A stretch of DNA of 63,867 bases, the filler included, from Octopus bimaculoides (Eukaryota): the NCBI RefSeq assembly GCF_001194135.2. It is 7 parts of 7 records of this genome, joined end to end, with 100 filler letters (N's around TTAATTAATTAA, not from the genome) between each part and the next. Parts side by side here need not be neighbours in the genome. Positions count along the whole stretch, not along the records: positions 48,232 to 55,694 come from NC_068993.1; 6 more parts are not named here. One strand, given 5' to 3'. Numbering within the stretch: position 1 is the stretch's first letter; each line of letters starts with the position of its first letter. The position numbers and the translations under genes are program-made. Shown one piece after another: positions 50,290 through 54,882 of this stretch. Below the pieces are notes generated by a model, which saw nothing but the letters and a program-made list of their open reading frames with translations, was not told the DNA's origin and searched no databases.

Positions 50290-51942
50290 CTAGGCATTCA
50301 TTTTCCAAACGAGAGGATTTTCACTTTGGTTTTCTTCATCAATGTATTCCAAACTGGAAAGTTTCTCAGCATCGATACCTTGGGACGCCAAAAATGAGTT
50401 AGCATTCATCATCACATCATCCATAACGTCCAGTGGGATATTTTCATTGGAAAGAAACCGTTTGGTGGTGCAACCGAGATTTTGAGAGCGATGGTGAAAG
50501 AAAATACGGTAAGATATCCCGAAGCATATCCTAACGCTGTGAGCGGTGAAGCTTACGACGGAGATTCTGAGACCTACCTTTAAGATTCCAATACGTACGT
50601 AGAAGGTTTTCGAGAACTTGCCTCCTATAAAATAGATATAAACATAGATATTAGACACTGGAGAAAACCACAAATATATGTATACATGTATATTTATGTA
50701 TGTGATTAAATTAATGAGTAAAGTTAATATTTATAAGGAATTTACCATTTCCGTTGGGTGTGCAACGCACACGTACCACATCCGGAATATACGCCCCTGA
50801 CATGTATGTATGTATGTATGTATGTATGTATGTATGTATGTATGCGTGTATATATGTATGTATGTATGTATGCATGTATGCGTGTATGTATGCATGCATG
50901 TATGTATGTATGTATGTATGTATGCATGTATGTATGCATGTATGTATGTATGCATGTATGTATGCATGTATGTATGTATGCATGCATGTTATTTTGTTTT
51001 CTTTTATAGTTTCAGCTTAGAGCTGCGGCCATGCTGATGCACCGCCGTGTAAAATAAGATGAAAGAGATGTATAGCGAAATACCGCTAAGCATTTCGTCT
51101 ATCGTGCTAACAATTCTGCCAGGTCGCCGCCTTCATGTCTTATATAAGGCTAATGCAAAACAATAAGAGACTTCAGCGTACACATAATGTATAAAATAAA
51201 TGTTATTAATGAAGGTGCAGGCATAGCTATGTGGTAAGAAGCTTGCAATGTTCCAGGTTCAGTTCCACTGCGTGGAACCTTGGGCAAGTATCTTTTACTA
51301 TAGTCTCGGGTCGACCAAAGCTTTCTGAGTGGATTTTGAAGACGGAAACTGCAAAAAGCCGGTGTTTTTCCACAATCACTGCTTGGCAACCGATGATGGT
51401 GTGTTTGCGCCTCCGTGACTTAGCGGTTCGCCAAAGAAACCGTTAGAATAAGTACTATGCTTCAAAATATAAGGTCGATTTATCTGGGTAAAAAAAAGTC
51501 TTCAAGGTGGTGCCCCAGCATGGCCGCAATCAAATGACTGAAACAAATGAAAGATGAAAAGCAGAGAATGATGCAGTAAAAATACTCACGGTAAGTTCTC
51601 GTCATCAATGTGCGTCTACCGACCGTCAGCCTGAATGTTATTGCCCCTCTCCCAACATACATACTGATGCAGACTGAAATGGAAATATAATTAACCTATT
51701 AGCGATCCAGTGTGTACTCAGCCTGGAGCTTGAAAGCAGCAAAATAATCTATTCTACTCTTGGTACAAAATTTTTGAAGAGGTGGGGGACAGTCGATTAC
51801 ATCGACTCCAGTACACAACTGGTATTTAATCTATCGACCCCCGAAAGGATGAAACGCAAAGTCGACCTCGGCGGAATTTGACCTCAGAACGTAAAGACAG
51901 ACGAAATATCGCTAATAATAATAATTATTATTATCATTATTA

Positions 51943-51975
<33 letters not shown>

Positions 51976-52040
51976 CATTATCATCATCATCATTATTATT
52001 ATTATTATTATCATTATTATTATTATCATTATTATTATCA

Positions 52041-52080
<40 letters not shown>

Positions 52081-52169
52081 CATCATCATCATCATCATTA
52101 TCATTATCATCATCATCATCATCATTATTATTATTATTATCATTATCATCATCATCATTATTATTATTA

Positions 52170-52233
<64 letters not shown>

Positions 52234-52262
52234 TATTATTATTATTATCATTATCATCATCA

Positions 52263-52327
<65 letters not shown>

Positions 52328-54882
52328 GTTATTGTTATAAGATGATCGAAAGAGCGAAAGAACAGAATATGCACAGCAAGGAAAGAATTAAAAATCAAGA
52401 ATATAATACGAAAGTTTCTATTACAACAGTGGTATTGCATATCTGCGCACTGACCTAGCTTTGTCACCTTATCATATTCCTCAACTGCGTTAGTTGTTCA
52501 CGTTGGCAGGCATACATGTTCACACAAACACACGTTTTCCCCTCTTTCTTTCCAGCATATGAAAATACTTCCGAATTTATATCTTAAGAAATGTTTTCAT
52601 CGCAAACAGATATAAAGTAATGTCGACCCTGGTAGCATTCGAACCAGAGACACAAAGAGACGGGAAGAAATTCTGCAAAGCATTTGGCTCGGCGAAGTAG
52701 TGATTCTGGCAGATCGAAATCTTAAGGAAACTGAATTTACTTTCCTATTTTGGCACGAAGCCAGCAATTTTGAGAGTAGTAACGTCAATTATATCAATCC
52801 CACTAGTCGACTTCCGAAAGGAAGAAAGGCAAAGCCGACATCGATGGAATTTGAAGTGAGAATTATGAAAACGGACGAAATGCCGCTAAACATTTTGTCC
52901 GGCATACTCTGTCAGCTTCGAAGGGAACAGTGTAAATATTACTTACATGAAGGAATATGTCTGATTCTTACACAACATCTTCCATTATTTCCTCTCCAAT
53001 GGCAACCCATTCTTTCTACATTTTGTAAATCATTCCCTGAAACATCAGTTATCAATTCCTCATTTGACGTATCGATATCTGCTTTCTTATCCGGAACCAT
53101 TCCATCCGTCTCAAGTTTTTCGATCATTTCCTCCAAAGCAATTCTTGCTTCTGCAATTCCATCTGTGAATGTAATGAAGTGCATGAAACTGAATGAAATT
53201 AAACAATTAATTATGTCGATATGATATTTGATATGATTCATGACGTAGCACGTTCAATCATATGTTTCGTGTGTAGATATGTAAAAATTTGCGAATGTGA
53301 TTTATAAATATCATCATCATCATCATCATCATCGTTTAACGTCCGCTTTCCATGCTAGCATGGGTTGGACGATTTGACTGAGGACTGGTGAAACCGGATG
53401 GCAACACCAGGCTCCAGGTCGATAGATATATAGGCATTGATGTAGGCAGGTAGAAAACAGGTTAAGCTTGGATTTAAGAACGTTGCTTAAAAGGTAGGAA
53501 CTAGCTTAAGTAGAGCGGAGGCGCAATGGCCCAGTGGTTAGGGCAGCGGACTCGCAGTCATAGAATCGTGGTTTCGATTCCCAGACCGGACGTTGTGAGT
53601 GTTTATTGAGCGAAAGCACCTAAAAGCTCCACAAGGCTCCGGCAGGGGAAGGTGGCGAACCCTGCTGTACTCTTTCACCACAACTTTCTCTCACTCTTAC
53701 TTCCTGTTTCTGTTGTGCCTGTAATTCAAAGGGTCAGGCTTGTCACACTGTGTCACGCTGGATATCCCCGAGTACTACGTTAAGGGTACACGTGTCTGTG
53801 GAGTGCTCAGCCACTTGCACGTTAATTTCACGAGCAGGCTGTTCCGTTGATCGGATCGACTGGAACCCTCGTCGACGTAAGCGACGGAGTGCCAACAGCA
53901 TTCATGCAGGCACACAAAGCTAATTCTTCATATACATTTAAATAAGACAGAGAGACTAATGATATCATTAATATAACGCTGGGATGCTTGTATCACCATC
54001 ACTATTTTCTTGAAGCGAGGAAGAATCGGAATCTTCAGATCAACCAATAAATACCATTCTTAGAGAACGTCATGGAAAGAAAGTTATAACAGAAGTTATA
54101 ATTCCCCCAACAATTCACTCTTACTGTGCATGAGAATGCAGCGGTCCTTCGGTGAACACGAAACCACAAGATTACGAAGCGGCCTTCTTAACCGCATAGC
54201 CCTTGTCGGAACACCGTATTCAAGGGCTCCAAAATATTGACACCAGTAAAAGGTCGAGAAAATCGGAAAAATTCGACATCAGGACTCATGTTTTTTTTTA
54301 AATCTTGGTGCCTATTCTATGGGAACGTAAACAAAACAGGAGCGGTTGCCACGCGGTCAGAGACATGCAGAAAGATACTCACACATACGCACGCATATAA
54401 ATAATATATATATTCATACATACATACATACATGCGTATGGTAGGAAGCTTGCCATATAGGTTGTGTGGTAAGAAGCTTGCTTCCCAACCACATGGTTCC
54501 GGCTTCAGTCCCACTGTGTGGTACCTCGGGCAAGTATCTTCTACTATGGCTTCATGGAAGATAGTTTGTTTTCTCGACAATTTTGCTGCCATTTCTAGCA
54601 AATTAAGTGCATTTAGATGTATGAGTGGGTGCCGAAAAGTCCTAGCTTCAAGGGTATCACGAAAAGCCTGATTGGCGACCCAACCTTCCAATTTCTTTTA
54701 CACACTGCGTATGTAGTGTGTGTGTTGAGCGTGTGTGTGTGTGTGTGAGTATGTGTGTGTGTGTATTGTGTTACAATAAAGTAGTACCTACCTTCACTTA
54801 TCTTCGGTTCAGTATCTACGACAGCACCAGTTCCCAGGTAGAACATGACCGCCAAATAAATGAGAGTGTTCATCATCTTCAT
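50290..54882 (-). CDS. Secreted prepro-protein, ~241 aa: signal, acidic pro-region, cationic 6-Cys beta-rich core (DUF4773-like Cys spacing), KR, acidic C-terminal peptide
   Basis: Exons 54882-54792, 53162-52947, 51673-51590 and 50624-50290; all GT-AG phase-1 introns (donors GTAGGT, GTAAGT, GTGAGT) join in one open frame. Core MGCHWRGNNGRCCVRIRHIPSFCISMYVGRGAITFRLTVGRRTLMTRTYRGKFSKTFYVRIGILKVGLRISVVSFTAHSVRICFGISYRIFFHHRSQNLGCTTKR. TATA-like box upstream and AATAAA at about 50082-50077. Confidence 0.88.
51915..52335. repeat. ~420-bp compound (ATT)n/(ATC)n microsatellite in intron 2 of the secreted precursor gene
   Basis: Direct inspection. Confidence 0.95.
53517..53899 (+). mobile_element. 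Full-length tRNA-derived SINE, family A copy 3 (intron 1, antisense to the host gene)
   Basis: Same head, body and tail as 21237. Confidence 0.85.

Follow-up and report, generated by a model that had tools for sequence, protein, structure and literature searches.

A polycationic core between conserved acidic arms in LOC106872507, a divergent octopod relative of the DUF4773 family in Octopus bimaculoides

The stretch of Octopus bimaculoides DNA analysed here (the window; 63,867 nucleotides, with positions counted along the whole stretch) contains, on its minus strand, the gene LOC106872507, in a piece that corresponds to chromosome CM046613.1 at ~8.23-8.24 Mb. Its product of 241 amino acids (aa) is composed of a hydrophobic leader, an acidic N-terminal part, a strongly cationic core and an acidic C-terminal tail. 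We propose, with a probability of roughly 0.45, that this protein is a self-neutralised cationic effector of the host-defence type, in which the acidic arms would mask the polycationic core and the exposed core would act on extracellular polyanions, most plausibly in barrier or immune secretions. The arms may serve as built-in electrostatic masks or chaperones of the polycationic domain while it is made and stored. Once outside the cell, they would be displaced or trimmed, and the freed core could then bind polyanions, for example membranes, the envelopes of microbes, and sulfated or nucleic-acid polymers. A conserved convertase site would not be needed for this release and is not supported.

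Residues 6-16 of the leader (aa 1-22) are hydrophobic (mean Kyte-Doolittle value 2.1) and are followed by the small residues G-T-G-A; alignment shows the leader to be homologous and conserved across the family. Residues 23-81 form the acidic N part (59 aa), which holds 18 D/E and 6 K/R and terminates in NVER. The core, residues 82-186 (105 aa), contains no D/E, 16 R plus 4 K, six Cys and five His, and ends in TTKR, while the tail, residues 187-241 (55 aa), has 11 D/E and 2 K. Net charges are -12 for the N part, +20 for the core and -9 for the tail, with residues 23-241 as a whole at -1. A preliminary description of this DNA had counted these residues by hand, and all of its counts were exact. 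In 200,000 shuffles of the mature sequence, a D/E-free run of at least 105 residues was never obtained. The beta-strand alternation in the core that had been noted by eye was also upheld, as the beta-type periodicity of hydrophobic and polar residues exceeds that of shuffled sequences (z = 2.8, 11/2000). The charge partition is real and non-random by the shuffling measure, and it is family-wide in the cationic members.

Charges were compared among the cephalopod members of the family. Net charges of the N part, core and tail are -14/+21/-10 in the O. vulgaris ortholog and -13/+20/-20 in the Argonauta member P0007; in three further members they are -23/+21/-4 (P0010), -24/+24/-3 (P0012) and -22/+27/-2 (P0018). 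Five of the six cores compared, including that of LOC106872507, are free of D/E. The pattern is relaxed in some octopus paralogs, where the core carries +2 to +6. Judged from these alignments, the charge partition is a conserved design of the cephalopod branch, with the charge of the core matched by that of the arms.

The coding sequence (CDS), rebuilt from the window, consists of four minus-strand exons that join into 726 nt encoding 241 aa. All three introns have GT..AG ends, phase 1 and pyrimidine-rich acceptors. Along its whole length, the product matches XP_014775010.1 ("uncharacterized protein LOC106872507"; UniProt A0A0L8H7X4) at 100% identity. Transcript evidence came from a single run, SRR7158636, in which contig L002 (961 nt) carries a 60-nt 5' untranslated region (UTR), an unbroken CDS that matches the four exons of the genome without a difference, and 175 nt or more of 3' UTR; 3/3 junctions lie exactly at the modelled positions. 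Orthologs of 241 aa and 82% identity are present in O. vulgaris (CAI9731753.1) and O. sinensis (LOC115218395), and the same four exons and splice sites were located for the O. vulgaris gene. The parts of the gene and transcript, by window position, are as follows.

54883..54942, minus strand: 5' UTR, minimum extent (L002 positions 1-60 = window 54942..54883, 100%)
54792..54882, minus strand: exon 1 CDS, 91 nt, ATG at 54882; hydrophobic leader (aa 1 to ~20-22) and beginning of the acidic N part; donor GTAGGT, phase 1; exon 1/exon 2 junction present in L002
53163..54791, minus strand: intron 1, phase 1, with interspersed-repeat copies
52947..53162, minus strand: exon 2, 216 nt; remaining acidic part to aa 81 (window 53011), core from window 53010, with the first core strands and C84, W86, C93 and C94; acceptor ..TTCACAG, donor GTAAGT, phase 1
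51674..52946, minus strand: intron 2, phase 1, with a 415-nt (ATT/ATC)n microsatellite
51590..51673, minus strand: exon 3, 84 nt; core strands with C104 and ITFRLTVGRRT; acceptor ..TTTCAG, donor GTGAGT, phase 1
50625..51589, minus strand: intron 3, phase 1, with an (ATGT)n microsatellite
50458..50624, minus strand: exon 4 (50624..50290, 335 nt including TAG), first part; core strands to R186, with C164, the LGC182 motif and K185
50290..50457, minus strand: exon 4, second part; acidic C-terminal tail, aa 187-241, and stop TAG (50292..50290)
50115..50289, minus strand: 3' UTR, minimum extent (L002 positions 787-961 = window 50289..50115); colinear with the genome and well conserved in O. vulgaris

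LOC106872507 is a real, expressed and already annotated gene. The four phase-1 exons joining into an open reading frame (ORF) of about 241 aa, as first described, were confirmed by the RefSeq identity and the spliced contig; the gene was not hidden as had been claimed, since the identical protein was already annotated. It is missing from the bacterial-style ORF list because it is spliced. Models spliced by hand are often wrong, and this prior is what favours the view that the model is spurious or a pseudogene, made of chance ORFs joined by eye. Against that view stand the identical RefSeq protein, the junctions of the spliced contig, the orthologs with the same four exons, and a whole-gene dN/dS (omega) of 0.38 between O. 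bimaculoides and O. vulgaris, which shows a functional gene. We therefore reject this explanation, whose probability we regard as negligible.

The protein did not match any Pfam family, PF15998 (DUF4773) included, at E <= 10, and its placement comes through its relatives. An exhaustive HMMER search of 1.84 billion representative proteins returned only 18 matches at E <= 1e-3. Matches with a named source all come from cephalopods, namely O. bimaculoides, O. sinensis, O. vulgaris, Argonauta hians and the cuttlefish Acanthosepion pharaonis. Transcript contigs make up the remaining matches, and one of these, P0010, closely resembles the cuttlefish protein. P0010, P0012 and P0018, matched by the target profile in that search with E 3.7e-11, 2.4e-09 and 1.2e-05, score 37.3, 37.0 and 33.3 bits against PF15998 over profile positions 2-112 of 118, above the curated gathering cut-off of 27 bits. 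Sub-threshold scores were obtained for the O. vulgaris ortholog (15.2 bits, E 0.032, profile 9-101) and the adjacent paralog P0005 (14.7 bits), and no other family was matched by either. Alignment by hhalign of a 12-sequence octopod profile to a profile of the Pfam-passing branch gave a probability of 99.4% and E 2.4e-21 over 189 columns, including the leader and N-terminal helix, and two O. bimaculoides paralogs are named "DUF4773 domain-containing protein" in UniProt.

Residues C84, W86 and C93 are invariant family-wide, and the full-length octopod members all keep C164, G181 and C182 as well. The six Cys of the LOC106872507 protein align with 6/8 Cys of the Pfam-passing cuttlefish-type relatives, in which the extra pair falls at the positions of Y139 and G148. 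The resemblance to DUF4773 that had been suggested is thus borne out as homology by way of cuttlefish-type intermediates above the cut-off, although the protein itself scores nothing on PF15998, and the suggested loss of Cys was seen as one pair, not several, relative to the cuttlefish-type members. By these profile comparisons, the protein is a divergent relative of DUF4773 in the octopod branch that escapes the Pfam model, and the homology is real. Searches of the literature and the PDB found neither a function nor a solved structure for DUF4773.

An initial AlphaFold prediction from 2 sequences reached a predicted local distance difference test (pLDDT) score of 40 and was replaced by a run on the 18-sequence family alignment. 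In the latter, the core (residues 81-190; pLDDT 87-95) is predicted to form nine consecutive antiparallel strands joined by tight turns, a beta meander. The model has low confidence in an N-terminal helix at residues 30-49 and in tail helices at 199-211 and 216-223, while residues 50-78 and 222-241 seem to be disordered. A Foldseek search of this model against the PDB and BFVD gave no match with E <= 0.001, and by sequence neither the protein alone nor the family profile found anything meaningful in the PDB. The best Foldseek matches were meander barrels of the avidin/streptavidin and fatty-acid-binding protein types (rmsd, the root-mean-square deviation, 7-14 A; identity 5-12%), which have the same all-antiparallel, nearest-neighbour strand order as the predicted core; at E >= 0.047 and TM score <= 0.32, this likeness is one of topology class and not evidence of relationship. 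The check by AlphaFold and Foldseek proposed in the preliminary description thus gave a confident all-beta core and no solved structural neighbour, and the core fold, as modelled, is without a solved counterpart.

Between O. bimaculoides and O. vulgaris, the signal segment is identical at 21/22 residues (dN/dS 0.13), the acidic N part at 47/59 (0.39), the core at 76/105 (0.47) and the tail, the best-conserved segment, at 53/55 (0.14). The core differs at 29 positions, and basic residues are shifted by H85R, R87S, G110R, Y139K, R141H, K146N, A158R, Q178K and R186H, yet the net charge stays at +20/+21 and no D/E is gained. Because basic residues relocate while the charge holds and no acidic residue appears, selection seems to act on the overall charge of the core rather than on particular basic sites, and such selection agrees with an electrostatic mechanism. 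In several families of effector precursors, too, the leader and flanks are conserved and the cationic core evolves faster. The slow leader and tail and the faster core would be equally compatible with arms that are permanent functional parts of the protein.

Within the tail, residues 198-241 (window 50293-50424) are identical at 131/132 nt, with 0 nonsynonymous changes and 1 synonymous change over 23 synonymous sites. The 3' UTR (50115-50289) includes several windows with 38-39/40 nt identical to O. vulgaris, against an identity of ~84-86% in the introns of the gene. As this conservation at the nucleotide level is far above that of neutral sequence, it suggests that the 3' end of the transcript is under RNA-level constraint (structure, editing or microRNA sites) besides the constraint on the protein.

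A DUF4773 protein, A0A0L8GLC6, has been quantified in O. vulgaris skin mucus, where it is lower in senescent animals (ratios 0.142 and 0.455) and mucins also fall (PMC11431876). The N-terminus of this protein is identical at 28/31 residues to the family member P0009. From the occurrence of a paralog in skin mucus we infer that the LOC106872507 protein is secreted. In the part of the supplement text of the mucus proteome that was available (PMC11431876), neither it nor its O. vulgaris ortholog was found. An N-terminal peptide in Table S8 of the same study was considered as a sign of an uncleaved leader and rejected, as that table is an in-silico digest. Elsewhere, one cluster of oyster hemocytes has a DUF4773 gene as a marker (PMC12064177), and in locust pleuropodia that are secreting, a DUF4773 transcript ranks with the most abundant, beside lysozymes (PMC6966819); none of these three papers gives DUF4773 a function.

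The preliminary description had taken the protein for a true prepro-protein, from which convertase-type cuts after NVER81 and K185-R186 would free a 105-aa lytic, antimicrobial or venom chain while both acidic pieces are discarded. The charge layout is like that of precursors with acidic propieces, KR is present in O. bimaculoides, and the paralogs P0005 and P0015 stop directly after the LGCxxKxF motif, so the tail would be dispensable for some paralogs. However, both O. vulgaris and O. sinensis have KH at K185-R186, and K185 lies within the conserved LGCxxK motif of the domain, where the next residue varies among R/H/G/K/P/W. Ahead of the first Cys and M82 there is a single Arg, with the basic residue missing from most paralogs, and the family alignment has no conserved basic site at either boundary of the core. 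Conserved convertase sites were rejected on these grounds, which leave processing at KR doubtful. Nor was the view of the tail as a mere neutralising piece borne out: a disposable propeptide is doubtful because no other segment is as well conserved as the tail, and its C-terminal N-P-L-V-W-type motif, unlike a throw-away spacer, is found again in paralogs and in P0013, a separate fragment of transcript. The N part has a conserved amphipathic helix pattern, L-x-E-h-h-E-x-L-x-h-D, common to the cuttlefish-type branch, and the arms, with conserved motifs of their own, probably have specific roles. We consider release of the core by such cuts to be rather improbable. The absence of nonsynonymous change in residues 198-241, against an intron divergence of ~15%, and the retention of the C-terminal motif in paralogs and P0013 would also suit an acidic C-terminal peptide that is itself an active signalling or sorting product, with the cationic domain as its carrier. 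This we find very unlikely, given that no conserved dibasic site precedes the tail, no amidation signal is present, some paralogs are without the tail, and the invariant, structured Cys/Trp framework sits in the core.

The protein could instead have a non-defensive role as a material or packaging component, a block polyampholyte that self-associates or condenses with mucins and other polyanions in mucus, secretory-granule cores or other extracellular matrix. Many members have near-zero net charge and segregated blocks, a paralog is a quantified mucus component that declines in senescence together with mucins, and selection is purifying overall (omega 0.38). The repeats or low-complexity scaffolding typical of matrix proteins are absent, though, the protein is small and by prediction folds compactly with disulfide bonds, and several paralogs persist after losing the charge blocks; on balance we think this role unlikely. 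Several observations also weigh against a self-masked host-defence effector. The flanks are modelled with pLDDT of only ~30-58, and because their structures are of low confidence, masking by docking is deduced from charge alone. The correlation of core charge with the charges of both flanks summed, -0.81 by Spearman's measure across 13 full-length members (p 0.0007), favours charge compensation but carries no phylogenetic correction. With its omega of 0.47, below 1, the core does not display an arms-race signal. The mucus paralog A0A0L8GLC6 belongs to a branch with a nearly neutral core (P0009 core +2), so its secretion in mucus is no proof that the cationic members act there. Going further than the effector proposed here, the cationic cephalopod members might constitute an unrecognised class of self-masked polycationic beta-meander host-defence (or venom) proteins, whose conserved arms would be intramolecular inhibitors displaced by microbial polyanions and not cut off. 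We regard this broader claim as rather unlikely; if true, it would provide a first function for DUF4773 and a fold without a solved representative.

LOC106872507 is part of a same-strand tandem cluster of cephalopod-specific genes in the order of a further paralog (last exon L001:383-697), LOC106872507, LOC106872505 and LOC106872506, an arrangement that is kept in O. vulgaris. Within the cluster, the paralogs have the same four-exon layout, with 25-38% identity to the LOC106872507 protein, and more paralogs (LOC106876287/288/291/294/300) are found on the same chromosome. One exon of a neighbour was placed in the window.

48497..48593, minus strand: exon 1 of LOC106872505 (MMKLTIGGIIYLALMFHLGTGAVVNVEQKLSE), donor GTAAGT, phase 1; the remainder lies past the edge of the piece

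The RefSeq model of LOC106872505 (344 aa) has a second, partial domain copy inside it and may for that reason be a fused or read-through model. LOC106872506 (L008:12562-12852; 183 aa) ends directly after the LGCxxKxF motif. By tblastn, similarity to the acidic tail of another member runs on past its stop codon, so the tail has seemingly been lost through a premature stop. The last exon at L001:383-697, upstream of LOC106872507, is 35% identical to its protein and 41% identical to O. sinensis LOC115218502, and the core it encodes contains D/E. In O. vulgaris, P0023 (CAI9731747.1, 342 aa) appears to combine two adjacent family genes in one model, P0009-like and then P0024-like, and includes a leader remnant of the second copy.

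An assembly gap (N run) at 49293-49703 lies between two paralogs, bordered by (TA)n and (GT)n microsatellites. Copies of interspersed repeats occur at 51250-51301 and 54496-54547, and at 51791-51914 and 55429-55552 (inverted, 75%); the repeats sit in introns 1 and 3 and upstream of LOC106872507. Large microsatellites are present at 50802-50989, (ATGT)n, and 51924-52338, (ATT/ATC)n. Scans of the piece for tRNA genes (ARAGORN) and Rfam families made no calls.

The gene and its protein are already public as "uncharacterized", with paralogs labelled DUF4773, and no paper was found in a literature search for the locus, the accession or run SRR7158636. Three points appear to be undescribed, as no paper on them was found: that LOC106872507 belongs to the DUF4773 superfamily, that the cephalopod branch has charge blocks which are conserved and compensate each other, and that the confidently predicted fold is without a solved counterpart. 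DUF4773 is a widespread invertebrate secreted domain without known function or structure, and its cephalopod branch shows a conserved physicochemical design. Taken together, the charge design, fold prediction, tandem cluster and mucus paralog lead to a testable hypothesis of polyanion or membrane binding gated by the arms. The family offers candidate barrier-immunity proteins of octopus and a lead for cephalopod innate immunity or secretion biology. The findings overturn nothing known and would not surprise a specialist.

Compared with PF15998, the LOC106872507 protein is alike in its homologous core, its N-terminal leader and the presence of a paralog in a secretion. It differs in Cys content, with six in the octopod branch and eight in the cuttlefish-type branch, and its extreme charge blocks and conserved acidic tail are undescribed for DUF4773. 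The principle of an acidic mask on a cationic effector is well known. Precursors with an acidic propiece and a cationic mature part include alpha-defensin prepropeptides, eosinophil pro-major basic protein, and mussel myticin-type precursors with anionic C-terminal extensions. The LOC106872507 protein is set apart from these by an unrelated fold, its core being a predicted 105-aa nine-strand beta meander, by acidic segments on both sides and by the failure to find conserved cleavage sites at the boundaries. It is like them in having, after a leader, separate anionic and strongly cationic segments that nearly balance in charge (-12/+20/-9, net -1), and in that the cationic part (dN/dS 0.47) evolves faster than the leader (0.13) and the flanks (0.39 and 0.14).

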